Assembly: GCA_029953675.1 (NCBI GenBank)
Contig: JAMWBK010000012.1
Span: forward strand, 682,001 to 746,000
Length of the DNA stretch: 64,000 nucleotides
Direction: 5' to 3'
DNA from: Rhodosorus marinus CCMP1338
Lineage: Eukaryota > Plantae > Rhodophyta
The notes under the pieces were generated by a model. The model was not told the origin of the DNA, searched no databases, and was given only the letters and a program-made list of their open reading frames with translations. Position numbers and translations under genes: made by a program. Below are positions 14,398 through 43,998 of this stretch, piece by piece. The first letter of the stretch is position 1, and the number at the start of each line of letters is the position of its first letter.

Positions 14398-15292
14398 ATG
14401 GAGAGCTTGGGAGAGTATTGGAAGAGATTTAAGACTTCCTCGAACCAGTCGGTGCGTTTTAAGGATTTGACTTGGACCCAGCTGAGGATGTTTTGTTTAC
14501 GATTTTTTGACCGGATTTGAACCAATTCTTTCCGTTCGTGATTGGATTCTACAGGTTGTTCTGCAGGTAGTCAACCTTGGTCTGCTTCTCTCCGGAGCTC
14601 TTGTGGCGTACAAGATCCTGAGCTTTATCACGCAGGCTGAGAGCCCTATTGTGGTCGTCTTAAGGTGTGTGGGAGTAGACCCTCCTTTTTGCCCGGGTTT
14701 TTGCAGGATTTGATGTGACTCTGAAAACTTGATAATCGTGCCATCATCGACCGCAACAGTGAAAGCATGGAACCGACTATACGAAGAGGTGATCTTCTCT
14801 TCTTATCAAACTACAAAGAGCCCTATACCACCGGAGATATCGTGGTATACCTCATACCAGGAAGAGAAGTACCGATTGTGCATCGGGTTGTAAAGGTTTG
14901 CTCGCAACGTGCTCACCAAAGACCTGAAAACCCCCTGTTCAGGCCTGTCATCTGACATCCATCTTCTCCCACAGGTCCACGACAACGAGACGGATTCAGA
15001 CCCTCAAATCTTAACCAAAGGGGACAACAACTTCGCAGATGATATCCAACTTTACGAAGGTAGACGTTGGCTAACTCGAGATCTGATCATTGGAAAGGCG
15101 TATCTTATTGTCCCTTATGCGGGAATGGTGCGTTAAAGAACCAACTCTAGCCGCGCTCCGCTTTATCCCCAAGAATCTAACCGTTGACCCGTTCTGCTTC
15201 ACCCTTAGTTGACCATATGGTTGAACGACTACCCACCCTTGAAGTTCGCGCTACTCGGATCGATGTCTCTGTTCGCTTTGTTAACAGACTAG
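14398..15292 (+). CDS. SEC11: Signal peptidase complex catalytic subunit SEC11 (5 exons)
   Basis: Spliced product [18 protein letters not shown]|VVLQVVNLG...ESPIVVVLS|[15 protein letters not shown]...IPIVHRVVK-type motif|...LTKGDNN...PYAGM|[13 protein letters not shown] introns at 14452-14554, 14665-14759, 14896-14974, 15128-15208. Confidence 0.95.
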
Positions 15293-16089: not shown

Positions 16090-17412
16090 ATGGACAGTCT
16101 TGGAAACTACCGTGTCTATCGGTTTGGTTTGTGCCTGTTGCCCCCGTCTTGGAAACCCATCGCATGGAGTCGGGTGATATCCTTCACAGCGATTGCGATG
16201 TGCTGGTGGATCTTGTTCGTTACTAAAGCTTGACTTCATAGCCAGCCTTCACGTTCGTGTTCTGATCCTTAGTCTCGTTCTTCGACTGCTAAACACTAGA
16301 CTTCCATTCATTGTCGGTGGAAAGGGGAGTAGGTTGCTACGGCTGTGCTTTCTGTTTGTTCATCTGGACATCGCAGCGTGTGAACATCTTCTTCTAAGAA
16401 CGGCGTGTACAGACCCTGGAATTGTGCTTCGTTCGAGTTCTCCTCCAGCAGACGCTGAGAAATTCCGGCTTAAGAACGGTCGATATCCACGCTCAAAGCC
16501 AGCAACGGTGAACGGCGTTAGCACCCACACTTGGTTTTGCGGTAAGCTTTCTCTCAGATGAAGAAGTCGTGCGGCCGAGCGCGATTTGATTCTGTCTAAA
16601 TCAAGCATTGTGTTTTTGATGATCTTTAGGTACCTGTCTGATATGGATTCCTCAGAGAGGATTCCACTGCAAGACTTGTGACGTCTGCGTTCAACACTTT
16701 GACCACCACTGCGAGTTCACAGGAAGCTGTATTGGTGAGCAAACGGAATCTGTTTGTCGTTTTCTTCATGAACGAGCAAGAAAAGAATCTGTGGTCCTCA
16801 CCAGAGAGCTTTTTTGTCATCTCCAGGCGAACGCAACTACGGTCTGTTCTTTGGGGCCGCGTTAACGGCATCGCTTGCAGGATTGCTGAGCACTGTCTGG
16901 ATCGTCCTGTTCGTTGTTGAGCTTACTTCGATATCGAGCGAACAGAAATCCGTTCTCCTGAAGCTAACCGAAGGCCTCGGCTCGAGAGCGACACTGAAGC
17001 TGGTGGTAAGCTTCGTCTACCTGTCGCTATAGACAGGCCTAACCCAGTTCTGATGGATCGGGTTTTCCAGGTTCTTGCTTTCGTCATGGTGCTTGGAATG
17101 GTCTTCTTCTTCAGCTTTGCGGGGCTTCTTCTTCATCACCTTCAGCTTCTTCGGGAGAACATTACACACCACGAGATGGTACGATCCGGACCACTCTGCG
17201 GCCAAGCAGCGGTATCTCCATAGCTGACTGGTGGAGTCCTTTTGCTTTCAAAGTTGAGAGGTACTTGGGAACAAAGTTCTGGACCTCCGAAGAGTGCGTA
17301 TCCAAAGCGGAGTCTGGTTGAGGTGCTGAAGACGCTAGTCACAGACCGGCGGCCGGAGAGTGAGTTGTGGAGTCACATTCAGACACCGGGAGGAGGGTCC
17401 GGACAGGTTTAG
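16090..17412 (+). CDS. DHHC-type protein S-acyltransferase (multi-exon; start and some exon borders uncertain)
   Basis: TACTDPGIV; TWFC|GTCLIWIPQRGFHCKTCDVCVQHFDHHCEFTGSCIG|ERNYGLFF; HHLQLLRENITHHEM; TM segments. Intron 16542-16629 and further GT-AG introns. Confidence 0.88.
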
Positions 17413-19657: not shown

Positions 19658-21385
19658 ATGAGTAAGGCGGGAAGCAGGGATCCGTTCAGAATGAGGAAGA
19701 GTCCAGGGAGCTGGTTGACGCACAGGATTGTGATTTTTAGTGGTGTGGTGACAGTTTTGTTTGGGTTCTACGGGCTGACGTCGTTGAGGCAGGATTTGGA
19801 ATCGAGTTCGCTTGGTCAGGATGAGCAGTTTTTGGGCAAAAAATTGGTCGAAGTTCCGGAGGTTCCAGGTTCTGGACAGGGACCTACTGTATCAGCTGGT
19901 AGTGCAAGTGAGGAAGAGCTGATGGAGTCTCTGATGGACAAATACGCAATCAGTACTGAAGGTGGGCAAAAGCAGCCTGGGGCAGGTCCTCCGCTGCAGC
20001 CGCCTCAACAGGCACCTGTACCGCCGCCACCAGCGGTACCTCTATCAGCACCGGATACCCAGGTCCCTGCACCACCAGCCGTGCCCGTACCAACAGCGGA
20101 TGGACAGGTCCCTGCGCCACCAGCGCAGCAGCAAGTCCCACAGCCGCCAGCACAAGGCGATCCCGCAAACCCGTACTTCCGCTCCGTTGAAGTACCACCA
20201 GCGGGTGCGGCTGGTGGTCAACCTCCGCCACCACCTGCGGTACCAGCTGCTGTTGAACAGAATCCGCCCTCAGATCCGAATCCGCTCTCAGATCTAGACC
20301 TGTACATTCCAGAGGGCCCCAACGAGATGTTCGGAAAGACCATCTCCTTCAGCCCAATGGAGAAGTGGGACGCCATTCCGATCAACGTTGCGGATTACGA
20401 CCTGAGCAAACTGTCACAACAGCTGCCGGAGTGTGCGACCACTGTCTCACCGCCCAAGACGTTCATTTTTATCATGTCTTCTCATACTGGAAGTGCGTAT
20501 TCTCTCGGAGTCAGCGGATGCCAAGGTCATGTGAACTAAGAGCCGTGCTTTTGTGTAGGTACCGCAATGATGTCCCAGCTATTGCGACACCCAGATCTTC
20601 ACTGGCTTCACGGGGGTGGTACGATGGAACTCTTGAATCGGCCGGGCATTCTTGGCGACGATGAAGCCGAGGTAAGGTTCACAAGAGGGTTTATGTCCGA
20701 CTGCGTGAAAGTGGGTAAGGTCGGTGGGTTCAAAATGAATCCGACTCCGATCAAGCGCAACCCGGAACCATGGAAGCAGATTGCGGCCGACTTTGAGACT
20801 GGAGTCATCTGGAACTATCGAGAGAACATGTTAAAGAGGAGTGTTGGTCGATTCCCTCCATGTTTTCTCGACGATGACGTTTCTGTTGCCGGGGTCCAAG
20901 CAGGAATGAGCCGGGAGGAGCGATGTAAGCAAGGAGTCGGGTGCACGTTCAAGGTCGACGCGGAGAAGCTGCACTCTTTGATGGTGCGCTCGAAGATTCT
21001 CTATGATGATATGCATCAGGCGGTTAAGGAATTAACGGTGAATGCTGGTCGTCCGGCGTGCGTTCTGAATGTCCCGTACGAGGATTACCTCTACCACCCC
21101 ACGGAAACGATCCTTCAGATGGAAAAGTTCCTTGGGCTCAAGCCCTACATCACGGAGACGTGGAGGGCCAAAGCCACCAGCGACAACATGTGCGAGGTCG
21201 TAGAGAACTTTGCGGAGGTGTGCGCCGCATTCAGAGAGTGCAGCCTGTGGGGACAAATGTTAGAGGACCCGAAGAACAACTGCAGCTGCTCGAACTACCA
21301 GTACGAGTCTTTGGGGGGCGACGGTGTAAACCCGCTTTGCAAGGGATACTACCTACCAAATGCAGAGTACACCTGTCCGTACTAG
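19658..21385 (+). CDS. Type II membrane sulfotransferase-fold protein, paralog 1 (Stf0/P-loop sulfotransferase-like), ~553 aa, aperiodic Pro/Ala/Gln stem
   Basis: Short basic N-tail and TM (IVIFSGVVTVLFGFYGL). Intron 20493-20558 joins FIFIMSSHTGS|TAMMSQLLRHP. Further motifs GFKM, IWNYRENMLKRSVGR, YEDYL..P.E....[20 protein letters not shown]. Spliced length 1662 nt, in frame. Confidence 0.8.
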
Positions 21386-22419
21386 GGACTCAGAAAACGC
21401 CTCACTTAACCTATGTATTATAGTGGAGTCTTCAGTTGTTTCATAATGTGCTCAAAGAGTGACTGGCAGCAAGCACGGGACATGAGGTCTGAAGACCCGA
21501 GCAGAAGGCGCGGCGGCTTGCTAGGGTACTACACCACTTTCCAGGTTTGTTCCGATGCCTGTTTAGGCAGAGCGGCAGGACTCGATTTAACCACAGCAGA
21601 TCACGCAGTTCGCTGCGACTTAGTTGAGGTTTCCGGTTGTACCAGACGTTGGGAAACACTAGAGCAGAACCATTATTAGGTAGCTATAAAGCATGCTTTT
21701 TCGTATCCGTGGGTGAGCAAACGATAGCGCACAAGTTGTTGTTCAAGACACATCAATCCCCACCTTGTTTCTGGTTTCCGGTCCAAAACTGTCCCGGTAA
21801 TCAAAGTCAGGTGGGCAATCCGCAGCGGGAGCAAGCTCTTTGGCACGTGCTCGTGAGGGAAGTTGCTCAATGACGAGCGTTTAAAGAACTCATCATTGAA
21901 CTCTTCACCTAGGCGCAAAACCATCGGGATGCTCGTCCAGAGAGAGAGAGAGAGAGAAGAGGGATGGAGCAGGAGATAACCAGATTGCCGAGACAACCAA
22001 AGTCGGGTTGGTATCCACCATGGGTAGGTCTTTTCTAGCTCTTGGATCTCTTTCCAAAGACACCAGAACTGAAGACTATGGTTGGCTGGACATAACCTTA
22101 ACATAATAAATATTAAGTTCACCCTTGTAATGGTTGAAACGTTATGAGCTGGGGCATGTATCCCTGACGCGCTCGAGTCTAGCACATTTTCAACCCGCCG
22201 CCGAGGAACTTGGCCTCTCTCAACCTTTGATGTCGGCTCGTCTTCAACCACATCGTCTTGGTCATCCTCTGTCGTCTTAGGATCTCTGAAAGCCCTTCCG
22301 ACTGAACTCTACCCTGATCCACGTCTTCTTCTTGCTGCGCACCTTGTTTAAAATCATTATCATTGCTACCGTACCATTCCGGTAGCTGGTCGGGGAGAGA
22401 GAGAGAGAGGGAGAGAGAA

Positions 22420-22845
22420 CCCAAGGGCAGGAAACAGGAATCGAAAGAGAATGGAAAAGCAGACCACGTTTGCCTGCTCAAGAGAAGCCTGTACGGACTG
22501 AAGCAGGCATGGCGCGAGACGCGGACAACGGACCTAGAGAACGAAGGTTTCAGTGCACTACGTACGGAAAGCTGCGTATTCAGACAAGGCTACTGCCTGA
22601 TAGCAATCTACGTCGATGATATGCTAATGATCGGCAGCCAGGGGACCGTAGATGAGACAAAGACCGCGTTGTCCAGTCGCTACAAAAACAAGCCCCTCGG
22701 CACCGCAAAGCGACCACCTACGGGGTCAGAATCGCAAGAGTTAGGAAAAGGGTTGGATACTCTCGACGCAGGAGGGCTGCATTGAAAAGCTAGTCAAAAC
22801 TTACGGTTTGAGGGGATGCCATCCCCTATCCGCGCCCATCTCCAT
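22420..22845 (+). mobile_element. Ty1/copia reverse-transcriptase remnant, frameshifted
   Basis: GKADHVCLLKRSLYGLKQA and IAIYVDDMLMIG; after frameshifts GVRIAR and IEKLVKTYGLRGCHPLSAP. Confidence 0.88.
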
Positions 22846-23603
22846 TGAATCATCTTCACCATTCCCAAAGTCACAACCAAAAAAGTCGTACCAACACTTT
22901 TCCCGCGAAAAAATGACAATCCAAAAAAGGAATTTTGACTGGATACAATCATTATATTTTCGTCCACGAAATATCGTTGGATGCACAATTGTTTCGTCTC
23001 AAAAATGTGGACGTCGTTAAGGAGAATTTCGTATCTGTAGACTTTAAAGAGGTTGGAGCTTGTGGATGGGATGGGGAGAATGGGCAGGGGTTCGGGAGGG
23101 GTTTGGGAGAGGTTTAACTGGTTGCGGAGGAGAAGGATATTAAATCAGAGAGCTGGTTAATTCTACACTGTTTTAAATTCTTTGAGGGTGAATTTGGAGA
23201 GACGTGCCGCGCTGGGTATCTGTTTTGTGCGGAGAGGTTGGTGGTTTGGGTTCAGGTTGGTTTAAGGTTTTGGGTTGGTTGTTTGAAGAGATAGTGATGG
23301 TGAAGAGGGATTGTTAAAGTGGACGCCTGGTAGTGCTGTAATGGTGAATTGGAGAGACGCTTTGGTTTGGGGGTTGGATATCTGTTTTTTTATAGGCTTG
23401 GGAACGTGGTGTTCGGTTTGGATTTCGTCGGCGTGGGGGGTGAAAAGTTGGCTTGGGGAGTGTGAGTGACGGTCTTGAGCTGATGGGAAGCGATTGGAGG
23501 TGAGCTATCTATCCGTTGGGAGGACGCGCATTTTTTGGAAGGGCTGTTTGTGTTAGGAAATTGGTGTTGTTTAGTGGAAGGGTCGGGTATTTTTTGAGGA
23601 ATC

Positions 23604-24406
23604 ATGATGTGCGAGATGAAGAGGGTTTTGAAGAGGTACGATTCGCCTGACAAGAGGTGGAAGGAGACCATGTTTGTGAACTGTATGCAGCGGTTGAAGG
23701 ACAGGAGGCGACATAGGTTTGATGCTCATCGCCGGGTAGACGAGACGGATGTAGCGGAGGTGATGATGGAGGAGGTCAAAGTTCTCGCTCGTGAGAGCGA
23801 GGAGTCTGGGACGTCGAACGTGATGGAGACGGTGGACATGGACGAACTGGAGTTTGAGATTCTAAACGCGATAGAAGCAGAGGAGTTCCAAGATTTAGAG
23901 CACATCGTTAATGAGGAAATCCAGGAGCTGGAAGTTGAGGCAGATCAGAGGGAGGAGATTGAGCTGGACTTGCAAGGCCTGGAGCTCTCCGAGCTCGAGC
24001 AAAAGCAGATTTTCGTGCTCTGTCCGGTTTGCTTGAAGGATAGCTTGCGGGAAACCGGTGGAGGTTTGATGTGTTCATGCGGGACACTCCTGGCACCGTC
24101 CAAAACCGACGGACCAAATATTTCAGCGGTAAGGGGAACTACCTCGCAGAGGCCAGAGTAAAGCTTTTCCTCCGATGGCGAGGCACTAACTCCGTTCGTT
24201 TACAGGCTAAATGGGAACTAGAACAGGTTTATGCTGAGCACGCGTCAAACCTGTGTGCGGGTAAAATGGTTTGCACCAGACTGGATGCCGAAGCAGGGGG
24301 TCATATGCTGCGCTTCACCTGCGAAGAGTGCCCGCTGAACGCGATCGTACCTGACTCAAAAGACCCAAACACGCGATCAAAATATCTCCTCACGGCAATT
24401 CGATGA
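23604..24406 (+). CDS. RPAIN: RPA-interacting protein (RPAIN/RIP)-like, 2 exons
   Basis: N-terminal YDSP..WKETMFVNCMQRLKDRR, acidic middle, C-terminal CPVC..CSCG|..EH...C...CEEC zinc motif. Intron 24129-24205 with CACTAAC branch. Confidence 0.75.
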
Positions 24407-25170
24407 CCAAAGGCGACGGCGAACTGGATCGCAGCATTGAAACCAGGAGTGCAAGACTCAGGTCAACGGAAGGTTCCAGTGCGATTTCGCAGCCCCCGCT
24501 CCCTCCATCACACCTCCATCGCCTCCCTTTTTTTAGCCCCTTTGTTTTTCTAATCTACAGCAACTTTCGACGAGAACTAACTAAATATCCTAAAAAACCT
24601 CAATACAAAACCGAAAAAACCTCAAAATGCTAATCCATAATCTAAAACCAACCACCGACTATCCTTAATAAACTCTATGGCGAACAATAAATATACACCA
24701 CACCCTCCTCAATATTTCTCAAAACATAAAATACTTTCTTAATCTAGAAACTACTACCTAGTACTGATCCATAATATTGCAACCGGGTGACGCGGGTTGG
24801 TCCTTTCAGCCCTTTGCTGACAGGAAACTCCCTCCTCACATAAAACGAACAAAGGATGATTTAATGAAATATATATATTTTCAAGAGGAATTGGGTCAAA
24901 GGTTGAGATTTTCTTGGGAAAAAAAACGAAAACAGATCTTAAAAGGAAGTTCGGGCTGGTGGATTTGAGTTGGTAGGGAGACGGAGAGAGAGAGGGAGGG
25001 AGAGAGTGGGGGATGGAGAGGGAGAAGGGAGAGAGGGCTTGTAGGATTCTATTTAGAGGAGGATGTTTTTAAGGGGAGTGATGTGTTTTTATTGTTTTTT
25101 GAGCGGGTGATATTTTTGTTTGGAATTTTGGTTCTGTGCTTTTTGTCGTTGTTTTTTGGGTTTGAGAACG

Positions 25171-27460
25171 ATGGGAGAGGGTTTGGGTGAGATGAGGGTG
25201 AGGGGTGGCGGGGGTGAGAAGAGTACGGATGTGCGTGTGGAGGAGGGTGGGAGAGGGGGGAGTCGGGGTGTGAAGATGAGTATTGTGAAACCGCGGCAGA
25301 GGGTGAACAAGAGCGTGATGCTGATCGTGATTTTTCTGATGGTCACGGCTATTGGGATCTATGTGAGTTCGTCTGAGCCGATTTTTGGTGTGCCTGTGGG
25401 TCCTGTGGATAGAGCCCAGGGCGGGCAGAAGCCGTCTTCGGGAACACCAGGAACTCCAGGAACTCCAGGAACTTCTGGAACCTCTGGAAACCCTGAAACA
25501 CCTGGAACGCCAGGAACGCCAGGAACGCCAGGAACGCCAGGAACGCCAGGAACGCCAGGAACGCCAGGAACGCCAGGAACGCCAGGAACGCCAGGAACGC
25601 CAGGAACGCCAGGAACGCCAGGAACGCCAGGAACGCCTGGAACGCCTGGATCCCCTGGATCCCCTGGAACGCATGGATCCCCTGGAACGCATGGAACGCC
25701 CGGAGCACCCGGTACGCCTGGAACGCCTGGAAAACCTGAAACACCGGGAACGCCTGGAAAACCTGAAACACCGGGAACGCCTGGAAAACCTGAAACACCG
25801 GGAACGCCTGGAAAACCTGAAACACCGGGAACGCCTGGAACGCCTGGAACGCCTGGAACGCCTGGAACGCCTGGAACGCCTGGAACCCCCGGTACACCTG
25901 CAACGCCCGGTACACCTGCAACGCCTGGAACCCCCGGTACACCTGCAACGCCCGGTACACCTGCAACGCCTGGAACGCCTGGAACGCCCGGAACGCCTGG
26001 AACGCCTGGAATGCCTGGAACGACTGGAACGCCTGGAACGCCTGGAACGCCTGGAACCCCCGGTACACCTGCAACGCCCGGTACACCTGCAACGCCTGGA
26101 ACCCCCGGTACACCTGCAACGCCCGGTACACCTGCAACGCCTGGAACGCCTGGAACGCCCGGAACGCCTGGAACGCCTGGAATGCCTGGAACGACTGGAA
26201 TGCCTGGAACGCCTGGAATGCCTGGAACGCCTGGAATGCCCGGTACGCCTGGAACGCCTGGAACACCAGGAACACCTGCAACACCAGGAACACCTGCAAC
26301 ACCAGGAACACCTGCAACACCAGGAACACCTGCAACACCAGGAACACCTGCAACAGGCGGGCCTCCCGCAAGAGAAGACAAGTTCGTCAAGGCGACCAAC
26401 ACTGTCCCTGGATTTGATCCCACGACCATCCAGGACTTTTCGATGCTCAACAACCAGATTCCCTCGTGCTCGAAAGCTCGCAAGCCGAAGACATTCCTCA
26501 TGGTCATGTCCTCCCACACAGGAAGTAAGAACTGCTCCGTCCCTATTCATGGCATATCGCGCCTGCAGGGAGACCCGTTACAAGCTCTCATTCATACCAA
26601 CTGCTGTCTGCTTCTCTCTTTTTGAATTAGGTACCGCGCTCATGTCTATCCTAAAGCAGCATCCTGGAACAAGCATCGATGATCTACGAATTTTGGAACC
26701 GCTCAACACGAAGGAACGTACAGAGAACATTACAGCGGCAGTGGAATGGACGCGAGAGTACTTCCGCAAGGCTAGGGATGAAGGACGCTTTGTTGGTTTC
26801 AAGCTTAGCGGATTCCCGGTGATGCGGGCTAAGGAGGAATTTGCTCAGATTGTGGAGGAGTTTGAAACTGCAGTGATTTGGAACTTCCGCCTCGACTTTT
26901 TCAAGAGGTCTGTTGGCCGCTACCCGTTTCAGTGGCTTGGAGATGATACTGCCGTTTCCGGGATATCGAAGAAGGAGCTGGAGGAGCGGTGCAACATGGG
27001 GGTAGGGTGTAATTTCGAGGTTGACAATGTCGAGGATTTGCACTGTCAAATGACGAGGTCGTGGCGAGTTCACTGGGGAATGGAAGAGACTGTGGACTTT
27101 TTGACTGCTCGCTCGGTATTTGGGAAGTCTTGTGCGCTACATGTGGACTATCACGATTTCTTGAAGCATCCTGATCACGTGTCAATGCAGATGCAGGACT
27201 TTCTGGGTCTCCCTAGAAAGGGTATCGAGGCGACCCGGGTGAAGGCAACATCGGATAATATGTGCGAGGTCGTCAGTAACTATGCCGACTTGTGTGCTGC
27301 GTTTGGCGAATGCTCGGAATGGAAGGACATGTTGAACGACGAAGAAAACGGCTGTTCGTGCGATAACTATCAGTTCGAGTCCCTCGGAGGAGACGGAAAA
27401 AATAAGCTTTGCTCAAAGGATGCGGATCCGAGGGGACGTCGTTGGTGCGGAACTTGGTAA
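25171..27460 (+). CDS. Type II membrane sulfotransferase-fold protein, paralog 2, ~727 aa, (GTP)n stem (start codon uncertain)
   Basis: [20 protein letters not shown]. Intron 26525-26630 joins [11 protein letters not shown]|[11 protein letters not shown]. Further motifs [35 protein letters not shown]. Spliced length 2184 nt, in frame. Confidence 0.8.
25441..26355 (+). repeat. Coding 9-bp tandem repeat (GGAACGCCW; Gly-Thr-Pro) with 27-bp (GTPGKPETP x4) and 171-bp higher-order units
   Basis: Directly visible. Landmark sequences recur at 25881/26052 and 26011/26182, giving a period of 171 bp. Confidence 0.95.
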
Positions 27461-30263
27461 GATCACCCTCGAATCGATCATCAGCCTGGCGACTTGCGCT
27501 TACTAACCATGCTCCGATTTTCACCAACTGTTCGTACGCAGGGAGAGCGGAACGTAAATTCCGGAGAACTGATTGAAGCTAGTGCGTACTGAAGTGCTCA
27601 GTATGCTGCCTTTTGCTAGCTTACGGAGCTGATACCCGAGCGTAGTGACCAAGCGTGTGGCTTATATTCGATTTGGTGACTCCAGCAATTATTTCGTTTT
27701 TTTTGATTGGCGTATTCATCGTCGTATTGGGTGGCCACATCGCCGATGAGGCTGCAGCAGGCACATTGGGAAGAGTTTGGCCTCAACACGGACATTGGCC
27801 GCTCGTAGCACATCTGAAGATGTTGAATAGGCATTGCTTAACTTGCAGGCTTCCGATTCAAGGAGGCCGTGCGGTTCGGGTTGGGGGAGCTAGATCCTCA
27901 CTTCTAGTCAATCTCCTGACTGACACACTTGGATTTGATAACTCACGTTGGACGCTGATCATGCGACTGCCGATGAGTCTTGCACGGCGATTGTAACTAG
28001 TAGCTTCGAGAATGCTCCCTGTCGCTGGTTTTCTTGATGGTGGCTATCAGAACATGCACTTATCTACGTGTGGAAGCGCCTCGAGGTCATTGTCGTCAAT
28101 CAGCGTGGGCTTCGCTTTGGTTCCTTGTTGTTTTTGTTGTTGTTGTTATTGTTGTAGACCGGTTGATACAGGCCTGTGCTCCCAAAGGACACTGATTGGG
28201 GACAGCCAATGTAAAGATAAGCTCATATTTTCAATCGAACCGAGTCCCGGCAAGAGGTCCACCGCCCGTGGCCATCTCGCCGCTATAACAGAAGAGAAAA
28301 AAAAAAAGAACACCCCCGAACAACAGGCAGAGATGAGGCAAAAATTATCCGCATAGAAATAACGTCTACTTCAACGAGAAAACCAGCTCAAGGACTAAAA
28401 AGCTCCTACTACCCTTAGCCCCGCTTCCTCACCCCAGCTGTCCCCAAAAAAACCAAGTGGACAGCGGGACAAGGTATCTCGAAGAAATGATTGAACTTCT
28501 ATCAATATATAACCGTTGGAAATCCTTGACATAAATATAAAACTAAACGTGTCCAATTCTGAGCCTCTTTTTTTTCAGCATCGGATAGGCTCTAAAGTTT
28601 TTAATTTTTTCAATACAAATCACGTCATGACGACCATTTTTTGCTGCCTAATATTTCCAAAATAATTTGCCAATATTATTGAATACGAAATAAAAATAAG
28701 TTGCAATGGATATTGCTGTCCGCAGGGACCTTAAAATTGGGAGGAATACGTCTTGTCCCAGGCCAAAAAACAGTGATTTTACTTATTTTGGGCATTGTTC
28801 CTACGGGGTTTGTTTCCACTCATCATCGAGGGCCTTGGTTGATTTGATAGGGTTAGGTTCTCGTTGGCTTTTGGGCGCTCTTTCGGAACAGGCTAGGGCG
28901 TCTTGATAGCCTCCTCACGGAGCTGTTCTTGCTTGACTTGCTCTGGGTCTGGCCCTCCAACGCTTGCTTTATTATCAATGAGTTGGTACGAGAGCGCGTC
29001 AGCAGCGTTTTTTTTCTCTCTTCTCCAGGTAGTTTAGGCTCTGAATAAACGGGATGACGATGATGACAATTCCCTATTCCCAAAACGAAAGATTTGGCCA
29101 AAACGGGAGTTTCTGTAGTTCTGGTCGTCCATGAGCGTAGATTAGATGTCTTCTCCTTGCCCAAAAAAGTAACCTGAAAACCTCTTTTTTCGTCCAAAAC
29201 ACCCATTTTAGGGTGAAAACCTTCCCCTTCTCGCTATCCTCCGTAGATAAAAATTATTTTCTGGTAAGTTTTCTGCAGTCCCCTGACTTTAGGTTTTACT
29301 CACCCCCCAAAAAACATAAAACCTGTTCTTTTTATAGGACCCTGCAGACCCTGACAAACCCCCCCCCCCCTCCCCAAAACCATCCACCAAAACCTTCCAA
29401 ATCCGCAAAAGTTTGTTGTCAATCGAAGAAAAAGCAAAAGGATCGATCCTGAGAACAGACTATACCCCATTTTCGACGTAACTTTTATTTAATATTCAAT
29501 TATCTCGTGACCACAATTCTTATGTACAAGATAAGGGGGGTAAAAACACACCTCATATTTTCAAAAAGAGCAAACAATATTACTAAAAGATAATATAAAT
29601 ATACTTTACTACAGGGGACTGAAAATATGTTTATTAATTTTATGTTTTTTTGTAATTATTAATTAGATGTCATCGACACCGTAGGAAAATAAGTTTCCTT
29701 TTTTTTATTATTAATAATGAAAAGTGGGGGGGGTCAAAAAAAGAGGTGTCATCCGTCATGGATGGATGTGGGGTTCGTGACTTGTAATGGCAAAACTTTT
29801 TGGAGAGGAATTTGGGAGAGCGATTTGAGATGATTTGATGTGGTGGCTTTTTCCTTTTGACTATTGTTTGCCCAAGTTTCAGTGGGGACTTTGGGGAGGG
29901 AGGTTGGTAAGAGGAAGGGAACAGAGGGGGAGAGACAGAGAGAGAGAGAGAGAGAGTTGGTTTAGGAGTTTAGCCTTAGCTACAGGTTTAGGCTTTTGGG
30001 GGGGATGTTGGGGAGAGGGTTTGCTTCCGGCGTGTTTTTTTTTTTGGTTTTGGGGGGTTGGAGCATGAGGGCGTGGGAGCGTTCTGGTGTGTATGGAATT
30101 GCTTTTTGACCGGGGGCCTCGGGGGGGGGGGGGTTGGTTTTCGTGAATAGCTGGTTTGGGCCTCCGGAATAGGCCCGTTGTTGTTCAGCTGAGAGTTTTG
30201 GATGCGCTGAGAAGCCGTTGGGAAGATTTTGTCTTTTGCTTTATTTTGGATAAGTTTTGACAG

Positions 30264-32687
30264 ATGAAGTCCGCGGGTGGTCGGAGGGGGAAGTTGTTTG
30301 GTGGAAAGGGTACCACCGGTCGAACTGGATTTGAGCGAGGGGCGGGTCCAGAGGGGAGAAGATGGAGCAAGCTGTTAAGGTATATGGCGTTCCCGGTCTT
30401 TATGGCGGTTATTTTCCTCGGGATGCTTGCGAATACCGGGGATATGGGGAGTGGCAGCTCTTTCCGCATTGAGCAACTGACCCCGGGGGGTGAAGAAGAA
30501 GGACAAGCGGGACAACCGGTGGGTATTCCACCTGCGGCAGTTCAACCACCGACAACAGAACAACCACCCTCGCGTCAGCCGGGAACGGTACAACCACCTG
30601 TAGGAGCACCACCTGTAGGAGCACCACCGGCGGGAGCACCACCGGCGGGAGCACCACCTGTAGGGGCACCACCTGCGGGAGCACCACCTGTAGTAGCACC
30701 ACCCGTAGTAGCACCGCCTCCGGGAGCACCGCCTCCGGGAGCACCGCCTCCGGGAGCACCGCCTCCGGGAGCACCGCCTCCGGGAGCACCGCCTCCGGGA
30801 GCACCGCCTCCGGGAGCACCGCCTCCGGGAGCACCGCCTCCGGGAGCACCGCCTCCGGGAGCACCGCCTCCGGGAGCACCGCCTCCGGGAGCACCGCCTC
30901 CGGGAGCACCGCCTCCGGGAGCACCGCCTCCGGGAGCACCGCCTCCGGGAGCACCGCCTCCGGGAGCACCGCCTCCGGGAGCACCGCCTCCGGGAGCACC
31001 GCCTCCGGGAGCACCGCCTCCGGGAGCACCGCCTCCGGGAGCACCGCCTCCGGGAGCACCGCCTCCGGGAGCACCGCCTCCGGGAGCACCGCCTCCGGGA
31101 GCACCGCCTCCGGGAGCACCGCCTCCGGGAGCACCACCTCCGGGAGCACCACCTCCGGGAGCACCGCCTCCGGGAGCACCGCCTCCGGGAGCACCGCCTC
31201 CGGGAGCACCACCTCCGGGAGCACCACCCTTAGGAGCACCACCCTTAGGAGCACCACCTGTAGGGTCACCACCTGCGGGGGCACCACCCGTAGTAGCACC
31301 GCCTGCGGGGGCACCACCTGCGGGAGCACCACCTGTGAGTCAGGCGCAGGTGCCTCCACCAGCCGCGGTTGGAGGAGTTTTACCCGGACAATCTCCCGAG
31401 AATCCTTCAGGTACCTACCAGCGAAAACGGTGGGCACCCGTTTTCCTTGCGCTGACCTCCGTTCGATTCCACGAACCCGATTAGGTGATGATGTTCTCAG
31501 AAAGGTTGTGCCGCAATGCACAAAAGATCTGGATCCGCCCAAGGGCTATATCATGGTCATGTCCGCCCATACCGGAAGTACGTATTAGAAACAGGCGATT
31601 GCGCCATGCAAGGACTGCGATAACCTAGTTTCTCGTACAAGCCCTCGACTTCTCGCTCTAACAACCTTTTGGTATTCTTCTGTTAGGCACGGCGATGATG
31701 TCCCAGCTTACTCAGCACCCGGGTGTAGTGTGGGACATGAACAACTACGAGCCATTGAACCAGTTCGACTATGAGGAGCTGAATCCCTGGGGAGCAGCGG
31801 AGTGGGCCCGTGAGTACTTTGAACACTGGAACAATCCTGTGAATAACCCGGAAGGGAAGCTGCCCGGCTTCAAGATGAGCGCGGTGACGATCGTCAAGGC
31901 GCCGGAGGTGTTCAGACAGCTTGCGCGAGATTTCAAGCTGCGTATACTTTGGAACTTTCGCGAAGACGCTTTGAAGAGGGCGGCTGGTCGGTATCCGTAC
32001 TACTACCTAAAAGACGACACTTCCATTGGTGGACTCAACCTAGGAGAAGACGCGTCCTCACGTTGTGATATGGGTGTGGGCTGCTCTTTCAAGATCGACC
32101 GGATGGGACACCTACACTGCGTCATGATCAGAAATGCAAAGGTCGATGAGTACATGAAGAAGGCGGTGGACATCCTATCCACGGACCACGGGTGCTATCT
32201 GGAGCTGCTCTATGAGGATTACCTGCAGTATCCTGATGAGCAGATGGAAGAGATTTACAAATTTTTGGGACTTGAGAATTTAGAAGTCGAGTCCAAGAGG
32301 GGAAAGGCGACGTCGGACAACATGTGCAAAGTCATTGAAAACTATGACGAGGTCTGCGCAGCCTTCAACGAGTGCTCAGCATGGAAACAGTGGCTGAATG
32401 ACCCGAAGAACGGCTGCTCCTGTGAAAACTACACTTTTACAAGTTTGGGAGGAGACGGTGTGAACGAACTTTGTTCGACCCAGAAACCTCCAGACTATGC
32501 CCGTTGGTGCGGCGGGTTCAACTACGAGGAGGACGTGAAGCGAATCTTGAGGCTTCGCGAGGAAGGCCCGCAGGCAATGAAAGATTTCAAAGAAGCCAAG
32601 CTCGGATCTTCCAGCGAAGAACACAGGGAACCGACAGTCATTCATCTAAACAAGGGAGAAGTGACGAACTGGGGAAACCCAGAATAG
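30264..32687 (+). CDS. Type II membrane sulfotransferase-fold protein, paralog 3, ~746 aa, (GAPPP)n stem, 3 exons
   Basis: TM LLRYMAFPVFMAVIFLGML. Introns 31411-31484 and 31578-31686 give ENPSG|DDVLRKVVPQC...GYIMVMSAHTGS|TAMMSQLTQHP. Further motifs [40 protein letters not shown]. Spliced length 2241 nt, in frame. Confidence 0.8.
30591..31335 (+). repeat. Coding 15-bp tandem repeat; 33 GAPPP units (GGAGCACCGCCTCCG) flanked by GAPPV/GAPPA/VAPP variants
   Basis: Directly visible; the core 30722-31216 is nearly homogeneous. Confidence 0.95.
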
Positions 32688-33392: not shown

Positions 33393-34337
33393 TCAATTTT
33401 CATCGGTGCCGGTGCTGGGATCAACTACTGGTCCACGGACCAAGCGGTCTTTGCTTGGGCCAGTCTCTGGCTTACTCGCACTGCCTCCTCCTCCTCGGTG
33501 GTGTCCGCTCACGTTGTTCGTCCCTGTCGACGGATGGTGCTGTTGGTCGGAAACTGCGGTGTCACCATGTTGACGCTTTGTGATAGAAAGGTGTGTGTGG
33601 GTAGGTTGCCTGGTTCTCGCTACGCTGTCATCGTAGACGGTGACCTGGTCGAGTTCATGGTGCTTCTCGAGGCCGTGTAGGATTGCTGCTTCCTCCTCGG
33701 TGGGCAATCGGAGTTCATCGTAGAAGGCGAAGAAGACAACGAGAACGCAGATTCCGACCACGTACATCAGCGATAGAACGTGGAGCTTCTCAAGTAGGAA
33801 CGGGAACACCGTGCGGCCGATAACAGCACCGAAGCCGTACGTCGCTACAGAGAGGAGCGCGGGAATCCACTTTGAATCAGGGATCCATGTGAGCAGGAGC
33901 TTTACCCCAGTAGAATACAGGCTTCCCATCCCAGCTCCCAGCATCGCACTTCCAAAGTAGACGACGGAGAAATGAGAAGACTGAACTCCAAACGCGGTGA
34001 CCAAATGCCCGGCCTCCAGACAACATCCGATCAAGCCAACAGAACGTACCCTCTGAGGATATCTAAGCAGGAACAGTGAGCTAAGAACCAACGACAGCAG
34101 CATTGTCCGAACCCTGAAGTCGTGAGCCACCCGGAACGGACCGGTCATCCCATCGTCGAACTCACTCAGCCGCTCAGAAATCAAGACGTATTCACCAGCA
34201 AAACCCCCGCTCAGAATACAAAACATCGCACACGGAACTTTAGTCGTCCATCGAAAGTCCAGTCCGCTTGAGAGGTACCCAACCTCCTCACCCCCATCCT
34301 CCTCAACCTGTTCAATCTCCATCACATCCAAAAACAC
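33393..34337 (-). CDS. MFS (oxalate:formate antiporter/YhjX-like) N-terminal half-transporter with polar C-tail
   Basis: About 6 hydrophobic helices. Motif LGAGMGSLYSTGVKLLLTWIPDSK..ALLSVATYGFGAVIG resembles the OFA-family G.G.G..Y......WFPD..G.A.G motif. No second 6-TM half found. Confidence 0.6.
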   Translation of the reverse strand: MFLDVMEIEQVEEDGGEEVGYLSSGLDFRWTTKVPCAMFCILSGGFAGEYVLISERLSEFDDGMTGPFRVAHDFRVRTMLLSLVLSSLFLLRYPQRVRSVGLIGCCLEAGHLVTAFGVQSSHFSVVYFGSAMLGAGMGSLYSTGVKLLLTWIPDSKWIPALLSVATYGFGAVIGRTVFPFLLEKLHVLSLMYVVGICVLVVFFAFYDELRLPTEEEAAILHGLEKHHELDQVTVYDDSVARTRQPTHTHLSITKRQHGDTAVSDQQHHPSTGTNNVSGHHRGGGGSASKPETGPSKDRLVRGPVVDPSTGTDEN

Positions 34338-36362: not shown

Positions 36363-39300
36363 TCATACATTCCTCGGCCTTGGAATCCTTGACTGTGCCA
36401 GTCTGGGCCTGACGCTGCTCTTCACTGTCTTGACGGGTTCTATAATCGGTTTTGAGAAGACCATCGATGAGACCAATTCGTTCTCTTTCTCAGTGTCGTC
36501 CTCAATAAGCTGCTGTTCGTCCTTTTCGTCGTCCTCCTCTTGCTCATTCTGCTGCTTCTTCGCGCTATGGAAAGCTTCCAAGAGGTCGGCATGGGGTCCA
36601 GTCTTCTCCAGATCCCTCGGAATCGACCATTTTCTGCAAAAAAAAAAAAACAACGCAAACGGCAGGCTCTTAGGCGCTTTTCCCAAGAGGTCGACGGGCT
36701 TCTTTCCTCGCTTACCTTCTTCTTGGCGTCAAGGACGTTGGTTGATAAGACTTATAAGTCTCCTGCAAAGCGCCCTCCGCGTTCACGATGTTATTCGAGC
36801 AATCCATCAGCGCGGTAGTGGACTCAGAGCAGTTTCTCCTCATCTCCTCCGTCAGGTTGGTCAGACCCTGTCGATTCTGGTGACTCTCCATCGTCTCCTT
36901 TGAGCTCGCCTGAATCGTGTCACGAAAGATGGACATCTTGCTGGCTATCGACGACATATGCTTGTTGGTGTGGCTTCTAACAGATCCTAAGAGATCCCCA
37001 GTCTCCTTCCGGTCAGTTCCGACAAGATCCAGAGCTTTCCAGGTCTCAGATTCGACTTCTCCCAGGTTTCTTCCTGTCTTTGTGCACAGCGAGAAAACGT
37101 CTCCAATGGCGGCCTCCAGGCCTGTGGACATCGACGTGTGGATGGCCCGAGTCTGTTCATTCTGCTCATCGATTGATTTGAGCGTTGTCTGTACGCTCTT
37201 GGCCGTGCTCTGATCCAGTTCCCCGAGATTGGTTCTGGCAGCAGAGATCTCAGCCCCCATGCTGGAACCGATCTCTTCAAGAACCTGTTCCATCCGCTCG
37301 GCGCTCATTGTTGTGCTCTGCTGAACGGAAGATGCGATCATGGACAAAGCAGTCTTGAGCTTGCTGGTCACAGTCTCCTTGAGCAGCTCCGCTTGCTTGC
37401 TCTTCGTGGAGATGGTCTCCTCAAGTTCCGACTCAAGCAGACCGAGAATGTTCTGCTGCTTTTCCATCTCGCTTCGCACAACTGTACAAGCCAAGAGAGC
37501 AAAGGTTAGCGGCGAAAACTATTCGCACAACCCAGTCATCATCGAACCCGGGCTCTTACCAGTCTCAAGCGAGTTCAACTGGCCCACAGCTCTACTCAAT
37601 GACGTGCTCAAAGCCAACATCTCCGAGTCTCTCCTGGATTCAGAAGCGTTCCTAAAGTTTACAACCTAATACCCATCAAACAGTCGGCAGTTAGAAGCCA
37701 AATCGATGCTTAAGGACCTTTTTATTGAGCCCTTACCGAGTCCGTTGATCCTTGAAACAGATCGCCCAGCCTTAACAGCGTCGCGCCTACGTCTTCAACG
37801 AACTTGTTCATCCCATTCTCTGCTTCTAATCGATTCAATCCGACCTGAGGAGGAGTTCAACAAACCCATCGCTCAGCAAAACGTTATGTGTGCAGGCCCA
37901 GTCCATTCTAGAATCGATTCACTTACCTGTTTCTGAACAGTCAATCTCTTCGCTTCAGTGTCATCTGCGAACGACTTCATCTGAAGCTTTGAGCCCTCAA
38001 TGCACTCAGCAACAGAGTCCCACAAGCCGTTCAGTTCACTGGACATGCTTTGTACTCCTTTGGTATGAGCTGTTGTGAATCGATCCATCTCTTCCGCAGC
38101 CTGAGGTTCGTAGGCAATTTCAAGTATACTTCGTCCTTAGTTTGAGGCCGCTTTCGGCCTGAGAGAGGGCCCAGGAAACCTACCTTCACGCTGTCCCCTG
38201 CCTGCTTCTCAGCGATGGCCTTGACCTCCATTTTCAGTTTACCCAGGTGAGTGTACGTATCGCCCTCGAGGGTCTTCGTCAGCACACAGTTTTCAGTCTC
38301 TATCGACGATTTGTGGTTCACTGTGTCACAGAGGCTGTTGTAATCGGTCGTGGTTTTCTCAAGCTTGTCCTTGAGAGAATCTATATAGCCCCGGAGAACC
38401 TCCTCTTGTCTTCTTCTCTCTGTAGCTATCGTCCGCTGTTGGTTTGCTTCTTCTCTGATTCCATCAACTAGTTGCTGGAGATCATCAAACTGTTTCTAAA
38501 GGGGTAAAAGCAAGTGACCTTCGTTCAGCCGCAGACGTAGCTGAAACTGACTTGATCGCCGCCAGGGACAGCTACTCGCATAGTGACTGGAGCTCTATCA
38601 CGTACTTTGGCGTCTTCAGATCGCTCTTCTGCGAGGATCTTGTCCTCTTCAGCCTTCTCCAATGATGTGAGCGCCTTTTCGTACATTTCGTTGGTCTCGT
38701 TGACGAGGTTCTCGAGGTAGAGTTGCTTCTGCTCACGAGAGGCGAGAATGTTGTACTGATCAGCTGGTAGATACACCCCTTCCTTGGTTCTCATGGACTC
38801 GAGCTCCTTCCTAAGCCGGCTGTTCTCCTTCACCAGCTCCAGAATTTTATCCTTCTTCGATACCATGAGGTTCACTTGCGGACGGTTTCTGATCTTCTTC
38901 GCTCTGTTTTTAACGAACAGCCAGAGGAAATCATACGCTTCAGGATGACAGAGCTTGATCTTGACCAAAACGCCTCTCAAACAGAAGCACAAGTGCCCAT
39001 CTTGCCGCGACGGAAAAAAAACATACCGATAAGCATACTCAATAGTTGAGTTAGTCTCTTCAAGATCAGCTCCAGCTGGAGAACAGGTAGCGATAACAAG
39101 GGTCTTGTTCCTGCCTCCAAGTGACTCCTGGAGAATCCTGGTAAGCTTGGAATCTCTGTACGGAATATGCGGGTGATTGGCAACGAGTGCAGAGATCACC
39201 CGTCCCAGGGTCAACAGACTCTGGTTGATGTTCCCTGCCTCTCTTGAACGAACCCCAACCGCTCCTACGAGGGTAAACAAAATATTGAGGAGTGCTGAGC

Positions 39301-40396
39301 TGTCTGTATCGCCATAACAGAAGTCGGAAAGCGATCTGAACTTGGTTCCTCCGAATCTCACCGCTTCTAGAGATATTCTCAGCTCCAGCGAGATCGACGA
39401 GGTTCAGCTTGCCCACGCGCAGCATACCCTCGCCGCCTTCGCTGGTTTTGTCGTGAAGGTGGATAGTTATGGTGAAGATGGAGTGAGATCTGGATGATGT
39501 CTTGTTCATTAGAGTCTCTGCAGTCTTCCTCTTCTTGCTCGACATCTCGAGGATCTTAAAAATAGACGCAGAGAAACAGGACGAGGGTTTTAGACGCGCA
39601 GAAGGCCGGTTTTTGTCCCGCTCGAAGCACATCGTGGAGAGCGCTGAGATGTGCGCAATCCTGTTACGTCTAAGACTGCCTCTTTACATACCGAAAAGAT
39701 ATCTTCTTCCTTCTCAACGATGACATCAGTCAGTGATGATACATATGTTCCTTTCGACGTTTCTTCATAGATCTTGAGGTTCTGGTCCTTGTCGTTCGGA
39801 CTCAGAAGATCAGAGAGCGCCTCGTTGTACAGTTCCAGGTGTGAAACTTGGACGGTATAGTCGTCCGAGTTCTTGTTTAAATACTCAAAAATAGCTTTGA
39901 TCGATCTAGGAATGACGCCTGGAGCAAAAAAAGGAGTTTGGAGATTTAGGAGAAAAGCATCTTGAACTCTAGCGTTCATCTATCTTCACATACCGGCATT
40001 GAAATGGATGGCTTTCTTGGACTTTGACAGTCCCTCCATAGTGAAAGTCTTTCCGGTTCCTGTCTGACCATATGCGAAGATCGTGCAGTTGTATCCCTGA
40101 AGGACTTCGTCGACCACGGGCCGGCATACGGTCTCGAAAAGGTGCTGCTGAGTTGTCGTCGGGCCGAAAACGTTATCAAACGGGTAAGATTTGCACTGAG
40201 AAGCGCGCTTCGCTGACGTGGAGACGTTCAACTCGTTTCGGTTCTCGTCAGCCTCCACAACAGGAGTTTCGAGCGCCTCCAGCTCTTTTTGGGTGATCGG
40301 CCTCACCCGAACGACAACCTTTACCTTCCCATTCTCAGAACCTTCCTTTCCCCTCTCGGACCCTTCCTTCCCCTTCTCATACCCTTCCTTCCCCAT
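36363..40396 (-). CDS. Kinesin-5 (BimC/Eg5) motor protein, multi-exon
   Basis: [77 protein letters not shown], kinesin-5 neck RTKEGVYLP, long coiled coil, BimC-box-like [10 protein letters not shown]. Confidence 0.95.
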
Positions 40397-43082: not shown

Positions 43083-43998
43083 CTCACAATATAGTAAAAT
43101 TCAATGAACTTCATACAAAATCATTGGTTCTATATTTTCAAGTATCCACTCATATATTATAATTTGTAACAGAACATCAATTTGATCTATTAAGCGATCA
43201 TATTTCCAAAAACATATAATTATTATTTAATCACCTAATAATAATAAATATCTACTTTAATCGTGTGTAATTGAATTAAATACAACCAATAGTATATGAA
43301 TTTTCTTTTTATCTTCAATATAATAAAATAAAACTCTAAAATTAAACTTTTGTATGCACATTTATTTTTATTATTTGATACGATGCTAATGAGTGTTGGT
43401 GATTGGTTCGCTCGTGAAATTTATTAATATTGTTTAATTTAGGTTTTCGATGTGAGCGAGCTATATAGCGCGATGGAGCCAAAGCTTCGCTTCTGGAGTC
43501 GACTGGAAGAACTAGGAGATCGCGTAGAGATAATATGGGACATCAACATAGAATTTTATCAATAAGAGGGGAGAACCCTCCCCCCCACCTCCCTCCCATC
43601 CCCACATCGTGCATTGTGAGGGAGAGTTCATATTCGATACATTTTGAGCTGATGAGAACAATAAGGACGAGAGTTGATATTTGATAGCTTTGGATCCGAG
43701 GATGAACGGCTTGAATGCACCGACAGATCAAAGGCTGGTAAAAAGATAAAGGTCACAATGAATCCAACATAATGCGCAGCATCCTTCTGCCACCAACCAG
43801 TGGACAGCCTGGGACATTTGATCAGTCTCTAAGTAGAAGTCAGAACTACTCAGCGATGTCTTCAATGATGGTGTTGCGTCTGCCACTTTGCGTCAGGACT
43901 CGAAGAGGTTGTGAACCTTTTTGAGAGATGTTAACATCGCAAAAAAAGGGCTATTCCAGACCTATTGCAGAACTTCCGCTGATATCTTTGGAGCAGAT

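Follow-up and report, generated by a model that had tools for sequence, protein, structure and literature searches.

Three linked genes of the red alga Rhodosorus marinus almost certainly encode divergent NodH/Stf0-like sulfotransferases of the secretory pathway

Do three neighbouring genes of Rhodosorus marinus CCMP1338 encode sulfotransferases and, if so, on which molecules would these enzymes act? The genes lie in a stretch of 64,000 nt (contig JAMWBK010000012.1 of assembly GCA_029953675.1, positions 682,001 to 746,000), hereafter the window, which is nuclear DNA of R. marinus. All three, designated g1, g2 and g3, are encoded on the plus strand within 13 kb, and six-frame analysis of open reading frames (ORFs) together with reading of the splice junctions gave proteins of 553, 696 and 746 amino acids (aa). 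An original prediction had described three co-oriented genes from a probable red alga, each with a basic tail, one transmembrane segment, a Pro-rich stem and a Cys-rich catalytic domain, and had named them candidate sulfated-galactan sulfotransferases. This architecture was correct, with a catalytic domain of about 290 aa, and the source is indeed a red alga, the catalytic domain of g1 being 100 % identical to the NCBI entry "hypothetical protein NDN08_004913 [Rhodosorus marinus]" (553 aa). Our analysis indicates that g1-g3 are almost certainly secretory-pathway sulfotransferases belonging to a divergent NodH/Stf0-like clade.

The fold of the catalytic domain was investigated with an AlphaFold2 (AF2) model computed from an alignment of 84 family sequences (predicted local distance difference test, pLDDT, 93.7; predicted template modelling score, pTM, 0.91). 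When this model was compared with the PDB using Foldseek, ranks 1-14 were occupied solely by sulfotransferases dependent on 3'-phosphoadenosine 5'-phosphosulfate (PAPS), with E values from 8e-5 to 1.5e-2 and probabilities of 0.75-1.00. The top match was Stf0 with trehalose (E 8e-5, probability 1.00). Ranks 2-14 included 3rnl, the heparan sulfate (HS) enzymes 3-OST-3 and 3-OST-1, the sulfotransferase (ST) domains of OLS and CurM, SULT7A1 and SULT1B1, as well as TPST2 and tick TPST, which stood at ranks 8-9 (E 1e-3), below Stf0 and 3-OST. The sulfotransferase fold proposed for the catalytic domain was thus recovered. In the model, the HTGST loop lies between strand 33-37 and helix 42-51, and GFK lies in strand 98-103 (domain numbering; addition of 235 gives the numbering of the g1 protein). 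R131 ends strand 124-130, ahead of helix 134-146, and YED follows strand 212-216.

By sequence, the link to known sulfotransferases was made through the fold search and through prokaryotic intermediates, because searches of PDB sequences with single sequences and with the family profile returned nothing significant for the red-algal family itself. A Pfam scan of g1-g3 gave no match to PF03567 or PF06990, and none to PF09037 (Stf0) even at E <= 1. Scores for PF00685 were below the cut-off of 22 bits (g1, 18.0; g2, 12.9; g3, 15.4), and an NCBIfam scan yielded no match for g1. In an exhaustive profile search over 1.84 billion representatives, 989 relatives were recovered, of which 94 lay below 1e-30. 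The second tier of these relatives consisted of soluble prokaryotic proteins of about 240 aa carrying the motifs GR(S/T)GS(T/S), GFK, R(R)N.VK..(V)S, YEDLL and KNTSDDLR.V..NFDEL, and all 10 of the 10 that were scanned passed the PF13469 (Sulfotransfer_3) cut-off of 27 bits, with 29.6-48.8 bits. Alignment of the red-algal family with 21 prokaryotic relatives by hhalign gave 99.9 % and an E value of 1.4e-34 over 232 columns. The profile of the prokaryotic relatives in turn matched the solved NodH lipopolysaccharide (LPS) sulfotransferase 9vki over nearly the whole domain (E 4e-11), followed by CurM ST, the TPSTs (TPST1/2 at 1e-5 to 1e-4) and Stf0; in NCBIfam, the prokaryotic relatives showed weak matches to Stf0 and NoeE. 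Moreover, when the red-algal family was aligned directly with part of the 9vki sequence, the 5'-phosphosulfate-binding (PSB) loop and the GFK and R.N regions aligned (hhalign, E 9e-5, probability 59 %). Since PF09037 gives no match, the family appears by sequence to be closer to the NodH/PF13469 type than to Stf0 proper. The Stf0-like fold that had been proposed was therefore borne out in structural terms, with a confident AF2 model and Stf0 heading fourteen PAPS sulfotransferases, but not as membership of the Stf0 sequence family.

The residues expected at the active site were highly conserved. E67, G100, K102, R131, K136, D149, G155, Y217, F234, K248 and N260 are invariant in 84 sequences. 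The strand-loop-helix of the PSB site is present, with G43 in 81/81, S44 in 80/81 and T or S at position 45 in 81/81 sequences, and the loop aligns with GRtGST of the relatives. Invariant E67 stands 26 residues past this loop; the Glu that serves as general base in HS 3-OST and TPST has a similar spacing after the PSB loop. From the list of hallmarks given in the original prediction, the xGST loop, GFK, R.N..K, YED and K.TSDN...N(Y/F/W).E are common to the prokaryotic PF13469 proteins, but the basic residue of "(R/K)xGST" is His in this family.

Splicing g1, g2 and g3 at the called introns produced uninterrupted proteins. The phase-1 intron foreseen inside the HTGS/T loop at 20493, 26525 and 31578 was exact in all three genes, with GT..AG borders: the Ser codon of H-T-G-S is cut after its first base, so that the exon reads ..CA(T/C) AC(T/A/C) GGA A before the GT of the intron and G(T/C) AC(C/G) GC(A/G).. 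after its AG. In g3, an additional intron (31411-31484) is required because the stem and the catalytic domain sit in different frames. In g2, a 3' intron turns a C-terminus ending ..CGTW before the stop into one ending ..CGTWESGT, akin to the homologue P0007, which ends ..CGTWSKGT; a g2 model stopping at 27460 was dropped in favour of this 3'-intron model, which fits both the NCBI length and P0007. The original prediction had also held that ORF callers would miss the family. This was not the case, since public annotation already carries spliced models of 553, 696 and 746 aa, at the same positions and without a Pfam match on record; the gene models are present and the family name is absent.

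Transcript evidence was obtained for g1. A 1662-nt transcriptome contig of a related strain (L003) holds an uninterrupted ORF of 514 aa, the g1 ortholog. On either side of the splice site, the contig aligns with the window at 92 % and 93.5 % nucleotide identity, and these two blocks abut at 20492/20559. The contig thus skips exactly the g1 intron 20493-20558, confirming the predicted junction of this gene; a third block, in the 5' stem, is 83 % identical. The stem of this ortholog is 39 residues shorter. Between g1 and the ortholog, the ratio of nonsynonymous to synonymous substitution rates (dN/dS) was 0.059 for the catalytic domain, compared to 0.51 for the stem, whose alignment has 39 gapped columns. 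Purifying selection on the catalytic domain is therefore strong, and the stem evolves freely via gain and loss of repeats.

We also analysed the architecture of the full-length proteins. The N-terminal tails of g1, g2 and g3 contain 6, 4 and 10 Lys and Arg residues and precede a single 19-aa hydrophobic segment (aa 24-42, 14-32 and 37-55), with Kyte-Doolittle values of 1.9-2.5 compared to at most 1.6 for all other segments. Consistent with the earlier proposal, a type II membrane topology like that of animal-type Golgi carbohydrate sulfotransferases is predicted for all three. The stems, of 203, 351 and 325 aa with 22, 29 and 46 % Pro, are mutually unrelated in sequence. Those of g2 and g3 are encoded by very long, near-perfect DNA tandem repeats and resemble mucin-type or hydroxyproline-rich glycoprotein (HRGP)-type modules. 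The catalytic domains contain 11-12 Cys, and 10 Cys positions are kept in 73-83 of 84 family members, a set that would fit a disulfide-bonded domain, probably with five disulfides, in the lumen or outside the cell.

On balance, we consider it probable that g1-g3 are anciently diverged paralogues within a rhodophyte-wide group of type II membrane PAPS-dependent sulfotransferases, with sugars as the likeliest acceptors. Several observations weigh against this reading. The PF13469 scores of g1, g2 and g3 (15.1, 26.2 and 26.4 bits) all fall below the cut-off, and the Foldseek TM-scores are modest (0.24-0.49 over the 14 top matches), which therefore indicates a divergent member of the sulfotransferase fold. 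H41 (His276 in g1), at the canonical Lys/Arg position of the PSB loop, is His in 78/81 and Arg in 3/81 sequences, and the canonical Ser of the 3'-phosphate-binding (3'-PB) site, position 138, is Ser in 33/84 and Ala in 46/84. Stems of 200-350 residues exceed those usual in Golgi enzymes by far, and the Golgi location is predicted from topology alone, a topology that is identical in the animal TPSTs, which also reside in the Golgi. Finally, the UniRef name for NDN08_004913 (g1) is "Protein-tyrosine sulfotransferase".

The altered PSB loop could mean that g1-g3 are not ordinary PAPS sulfotransferases but pseudoenzymes, glycan-binding proteins or enzymes using another donor. The prevalence of His, which is also found in the deeply diverging Porphyridium-type branch, compared to Arg in 21/21 prokaryotic relatives, and the poorly conserved 3'-PB Ser would agree with this idea, which we nevertheless regard as very unlikely. 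Indeed, E67, K102, R131, K136, Y217 and K248 are invariant, and the low dN/dS of the catalytic domain also speaks against it. Moreover, three family members (P0096, P0098 and P0100, among the few with precomputed PF13469 matches) keep Arg in an otherwise identical loop, SRSGST, so that the His/Arg position is interchangeable; in the acidic Golgi lumen, His may be positively charged. The loop His partly explains why Pfam misses the family.

Which acceptors would PAPS-dependent enzymes of this kind use? The UniRef name raises the alternative that g1-g3 are tyrosylprotein sulfotransferases, that is, type II Golgi enzymes acting on Tyr of secreted proteins or peptides and not on sugars, in line with the shared topology, the presence of TPST2 and tick TPST among the Foldseek matches and the match of the prokaryotic profile to TPST1/2. 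However, Stf0, 3-OST and NodH gave stronger matches than the TPSTs, whose sequence matches span only the C-terminal YED/FLG stretch. The family is also multi-copy and diverse, R. marinus alone having no fewer than 4 paralogues and Gracilariopsis at least 3 named members, in contrast to the low copy number of TPSTs in a plant survey (PMC12506393). The nearest relatives, in addition, occur in contexts of glycan biosynthesis or export. The gene neighbours of the prokaryotic relative P0201 (locus L011) encode five glycosyltransferases, a DegT aminotransferase, a polysaccharide deacetylase and two other sulfotransferases. In P0221, a Wzt-type ABC exporter ATPase carries a sulfotransferase domain at its C-terminus, and the gene adjoins an ABC2_membrane gene; the surroundings of a third relative, P0191, contain transposase genes and are uninformative. 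Taken together, a role as tyrosylprotein sulfotransferases seems decidedly unlikely.

A second alternative is that the enzymes sulfate glycolipids or small secreted metabolites and not matrix polymers. Stf0 sulfates trehalose for sulfolipid-1, and NodH acts on a lipo-chitooligosaccharide. Since the best fold match is Stf0 with trehalose, NodH is the best solved sequence-level relative of the prokaryotic clade, and the prokaryotic relatives show weak NCBIfam matches to Stf0 and NoeE, this possibility has some footing, but we judge it unlikely. The lumenal, disulfide-rich and stalked type II build predicted for g1-g3 is typical of enzymes acting on secretory-pathway glycans, and the prokaryotic contexts are polysaccharide clusters or exporters. 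We know of no sulfated glycolipid of the Stf0/NodH kind in Rhodosorus, which is a weak point against this alternative.

A carbohydrate would be the most likely acceptor of g1-g3, as argued indirectly from the contexts of P0201 and P0221, the sugar-active relatives Stf0, NodH and 3-OST, the cyanobacterial exopolysaccharide (EPS) clusters and the distribution of the family. Rhodosorus is reported to produce a sulfated heteropolysaccharide containing Glc, Gal, Xyl and GalA (PMC12073197), and we found no paper ascribing a galactan of the agar or carrageenan type to it. For these two reasons, the name "sulfated-galactan sulfotransferase" given in the original prediction is too specific for the Rhodosorus genes.

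From these data we propose the following mechanism for carbohydrate sulfation by g1-g3. The short basic cytosolic tail and the signal anchor would direct the proteins to the secretory pathway, presumably with residence in the Golgi. There, the long, fast-evolving stem rich in Pro, Thr, Gly and Ala, probably O-glycosylated and extended, would hold the disulfide-rich catalytic domain in the lumen. By alignment and by analogy with the mechanisms of Stf0, HS 3-OST and TPST, the 5'-phosphosulfate of PAPS would sit in the strand-loop-helix "SS-H-T-G-S-T", with His276 replacing the usual Arg or Lys, and the 3'-phosphate would be held by R366 and K371 (R131 and K136), which follow at the end of the next strand. 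E302 (E67) would serve as general base towards the hydroxyl of the acceptor, and K337 (K102, in GFK) would stabilise the leaving group or assist transfer. The most likely acceptors would be sugars of the sulfated matrix heteropolysaccharide of Rhodosorus or of glycoprotein glycans, with paralogues probably differing in the acceptor or the position that they modify.

The history of the three copies was less simple than expected. The shared intron had been taken as a sign of local duplication. However, a fourth paralogue on another contig, NDN08_007663 (P0013), has an 81-nt phase-1 intron at the identical HTGS/T position. Hence, the intron was already present in the ancestor of the Rhodosorus paralogues and is uninformative on the site of duplication, and we rejected it as proof of a local event; florideophyte family members are without introns. 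The pairwise identity of the g1-g3 catalytic domains, 45-47 %, also indicates old copies. In a neighbour-joining tree, the three genes fell into three old sub-clades, g1 with P0004 and P0008, g2 with P0007 (70 %) and g3 with the unlinked P0013 (58 %), to which g3 is closer than to g1 or g2 (47-49 %). Thus, g1-g3 are not each other's closest paralogues, and the trio is interrupted between g1 and g2. Judged from position alone, an old local duplication would be the simplest account of three copies within 13 kb. No further family copies or pseudogenes were found in the 64-kb window.

The family extends well beyond Rhodosorus. Named members come from Rhodosorus, Purpureofilum, Gracilariopsis, Agarophyton, Gracilaria, Pyropia and Porphyra, thus covering Stylonematophyceae, Bangiophyceae and Florideophyceae, with more distant relatives in Porphyridium. 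These taxa are generally known to make sulfated matrix polysaccharides. A third round of homologue searching, with the profile of 84 sequences, brought no newly named taxa among the best 8000 candidates. One member, P0123 (627 aa), carries two complete catalytic domains in tandem in one polypeptide, both with an HTGS-type loop. A 114.6-kb contig of another red alga (L005), the longest contig for both P0087 and P0040, carries P0040 and, about 7 kb off on the opposite strand, a 257-aa gene that is probably P0087 by match of length (2040-2813, minus strand; 10001-11248, plus strand). The gene order of family member, unknown protein of 461/500 aa and Pho88 is kept between this contig and Gracilariopsis chorda (L007).

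Entries from Rhodosorus, G. chorda, Gracilaria domingensis, Pyropia vietnamensis, Porphyra umbilicalis and Porphyridium purpureum bear the label "hypothetical", among them the P. umbilicalis member BU14_0165s0015 and the P. purpureum relative FVE85_9062, both annotated "hypothetical protein". The automatic UniProt names "Sulfotransferase domain-containing protein" and "Protein-tyrosine sulfotransferase" mean that the general fold assignment is already in databases. We found no description of this family in red algae in the open-access papers searched. Published red-algal candidate lists were built on PF00685, PF03567 and PF06990, with the candidates described as homologues of animal glycosaminoglycan (GAG) sulfotransferases, and count seven carbohydrate sulfotransferases in Chondrus and one in Porphyra (PMC4659905, PMC7359372, PMC10311240, PMC11625862); the inventories of PMC4659905, PMC7359372 and PMC10311240 do not cover the present family. 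The only biochemically characterised carrageenan-related enzymes of red algae are from Chondrus crispus extracts, and recombinant work on carbohydrate sulfotransferases has been difficult, with problems of protein production cited (PMC10311240).

The family thus provides new, apparently overlooked candidates for the sulfation of algal matrix sugars, the concept itself being unchanged. Its variant features are the His in the phosphosulfate loop, the Cys-rich tail and the hyper-extended repeat stalks. Recognising it widens the set of candidates for the sulfation of agar, porphyran, carrageenan and microalgal EPS, industrial polymers whose gelling and bioactive properties are set by the sulfation pattern, and offers defined soluble domains and the residues H276, E302, K337 and R366 for study. 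As a bolder and tentative idea, possible but not one that we expect to hold, this His-loop NodH/Stf0-like family, instead of or beside the animal-like CHST homologues listed to date, might be a main family of sulfotransferases for red-algal matrix polysaccharides. It would then derive from sulfotransferases of prokaryotic exopolysaccharides, and an Arg-to-His switch in the phosphosulfate loop, added disulfides and hyper-extended glycoprotein-like stalks would have fitted it to the Golgi lumen, with paralogues of different regiospecificities. If true, Porphyra would have further candidates, such as BU14_0165s0015, beyond the single carbohydrate sulfotransferase credited to it (PMC7359372).

The features of the three genes and of their surroundings are listed in Table 1. 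A copia-type remnant and an RPA-interacting-protein gene separate g1 from g2. About 12 kb upstream of the trio, the ORF with CBM_4_9 and DUF642 matches may encode a carbohydrate-binding protein of the wall or matrix. The MFS_1 transporter ORF directly follows g3; an MFS_1 gene (20033-20800, minus strand) also lies about 9 kb from a family member on contig L005, which has florideophyte-like synteny, and this may be coincidence. A tRNA scan and an Rfam scan of the whole window gave no match.

Table 1. Features of g1, g2 and g3 and of neighbouring genes (positions in the window)
Feature	Position	Strand	Basis
g1 exon 1: basic tail, signal anchor (nt 19727-19783), Pro-rich stem, catalytic start to first base of the HTGS Ser codon	19658..20492	+	ORF and junction reading; NCBI model identical
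g1 stem repeat: 45-nt unit, 2.2 copies, Pro-rich	20027..20124	+	tandem-repeat analysis
g1 intron, 66 nt, GT..AG, phase 1, inside the 5'-phosphosulfate-binding loop	20493..20558	+	junction reading; skipped in transcript contig L003
g1 exon 2: remaining catalytic domain with putative active-site residues E302, K337 (GFK), R366/K371, Y452 (YED), K483 (KATSDN); Cys-rich C-tail	20559..21385	+	translation, family alignment, AF2 model
g2 exon 1: tail, anchor (nt 25315-25371), (GTP)n stem, catalytic start	25276..26524	+	NCBI model has identical start base
g2 stem tandem repeat: 9-nt unit, 101.6 copies, encoding Gly-Thr-Pro triplets	25441..26354	+	tandem-repeat analysis
g2 intron 1, 106 nt, GT..AG, phase 1, homologous HTGS/T position	26525..26630	+	junction reading
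g2 exon 2: catalytic domain	26631..27456	+	translation, alignment
g2 intron 2, 85 nt, GTAAGA..CAG, TACTAAC branch-site motif	27457..27541	+	spliced model equals 696-aa NCBI model ending at 27557; C-terminus of homologue P0007
g2 exon 3: last 4 codons plus one base, stop codon	27542..27557	+	junction reading; NCBI model
g3 exon 1: tail, anchor (nt 30372-30428), (GAPPP)n stem	30264..31410	+	746-aa model equals NCBI length
g3 stem tandem repeat: 15-nt unit, 48.8 copies, encoding Gly-Ala-Pro-Pro-Pro	30603..31334	+	tandem-repeat analysis
g3 intron 1, 74 nt, GT..AG, phase 1	31411..31484	+	joins stem frame to catalytic frame
g3 exon 2: conserved P.C motif to HTG and first base of Ser	31485..31577	+	translation
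g3 intron 2, 109 nt, GT..AG, phase 1, homologous HTGS/T position	31578..31686	+	junction reading
g3 exon 3: catalytic domain and C-terminal extension of ~60 aa common to unlinked paralogue P0013	31687..32687	+	translation, alignment
RVT_1 ORF near window start, retroelement remnant	1277-2743	-	Pfam
823-aa ORF, C-terminus matching CBM_4_9 and DUF642	4574-7045	-	Pfam
Signal-peptidase-like Peptidase_S24/S26	14398-15292		Pfam
DHHC palmitoyltransferase	16090-17412		Pfam
Copia-type RVT_2 (reverse transcriptase) remnant, between g1 and the RPA-interacting-protein gene	22363-22785	+	Pfam
RPA-interacting-protein gene (RPA_interact_C), between g1 and g2	23604-24406		public annotation, Pfam
MFS_1 transporter ORF	33393-34337	-	Pfam
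Kinesin motor	38525-39361		Pfam
Mitochondrial carrier	43921-44682		Pfam
4HBT thioesterase	48772-49428		Pfam

How does the family compare to known sulfotransferase systems? The closest likeness is to the prokaryotic Sulfotransfer_3 (PF13469) proteins of about 240 aa, which are homologous by hhalign, have the motifs in the same order, among them the unusual K.TSDN...V.N(Y/F/W).E at the C-terminus, and occur in glycan-associated genomic contexts (P0201 and P0221). In contrast to the red-algal proteins, they are soluble, lack the anchor, the stem and the conserved Cys, and have Arg in the PSB loop; the red-algal proteins add an RC..G.GC loop and the Cys-rich C-tail. The NodH-type LPS/Nod-factor sulfotransferase (9vki, PF13469) aligns in the PSB loop, GFK and R.N and is likewise PAPS-dependent and directed at carbohydrate, but it is bacterial and cytosolic, with Arg in the loop and no Cys-rich tail, and is only a distant relative of the red-algal family. 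The Stf0 trehalose 2-sulfotransferase of Mycobacterium (1tex, PF09037), the best Foldseek match, has an equal fold and motif order, but the TM-score is 0.37-0.49, the enzyme is cytosolic with the disaccharide trehalose as acceptor, and g1-g3 give no PF09037 match.

Animal-type Golgi CHST and HS sulfotransferases (PF03567, PF06990 and PF00685) share with g1-g3 the predicted type II topology with a lumenal catalytic domain, the PAPS-dependent fold, HS 3-OST-1 and -3 being among the top fold matches, and the proposed role in sulfation of matrix glycans. However, the red-algal proteins form a separate sequence family, whose nearest non-algal relatives are prokaryotic and not metazoan. Finally, in the cyanobacterial sulfated-EPS system (xss of Synechocystis, XssA/XssE; PMC8205485), sulfotransferases of Pfam types including PF13469 are encoded inside polysaccharide clusters, as at locus L011, a comparison made by Pfam type. 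Genetic evidence from the xss cluster links such sulfotransferases to the production of sulfated exopolysaccharide (PMC8205485). These systems employ prokaryotic Wzx/Wzy or ABC pathways and have no Golgi, in contrast to the Golgi-based route proposed here for the red-algal enzymes.

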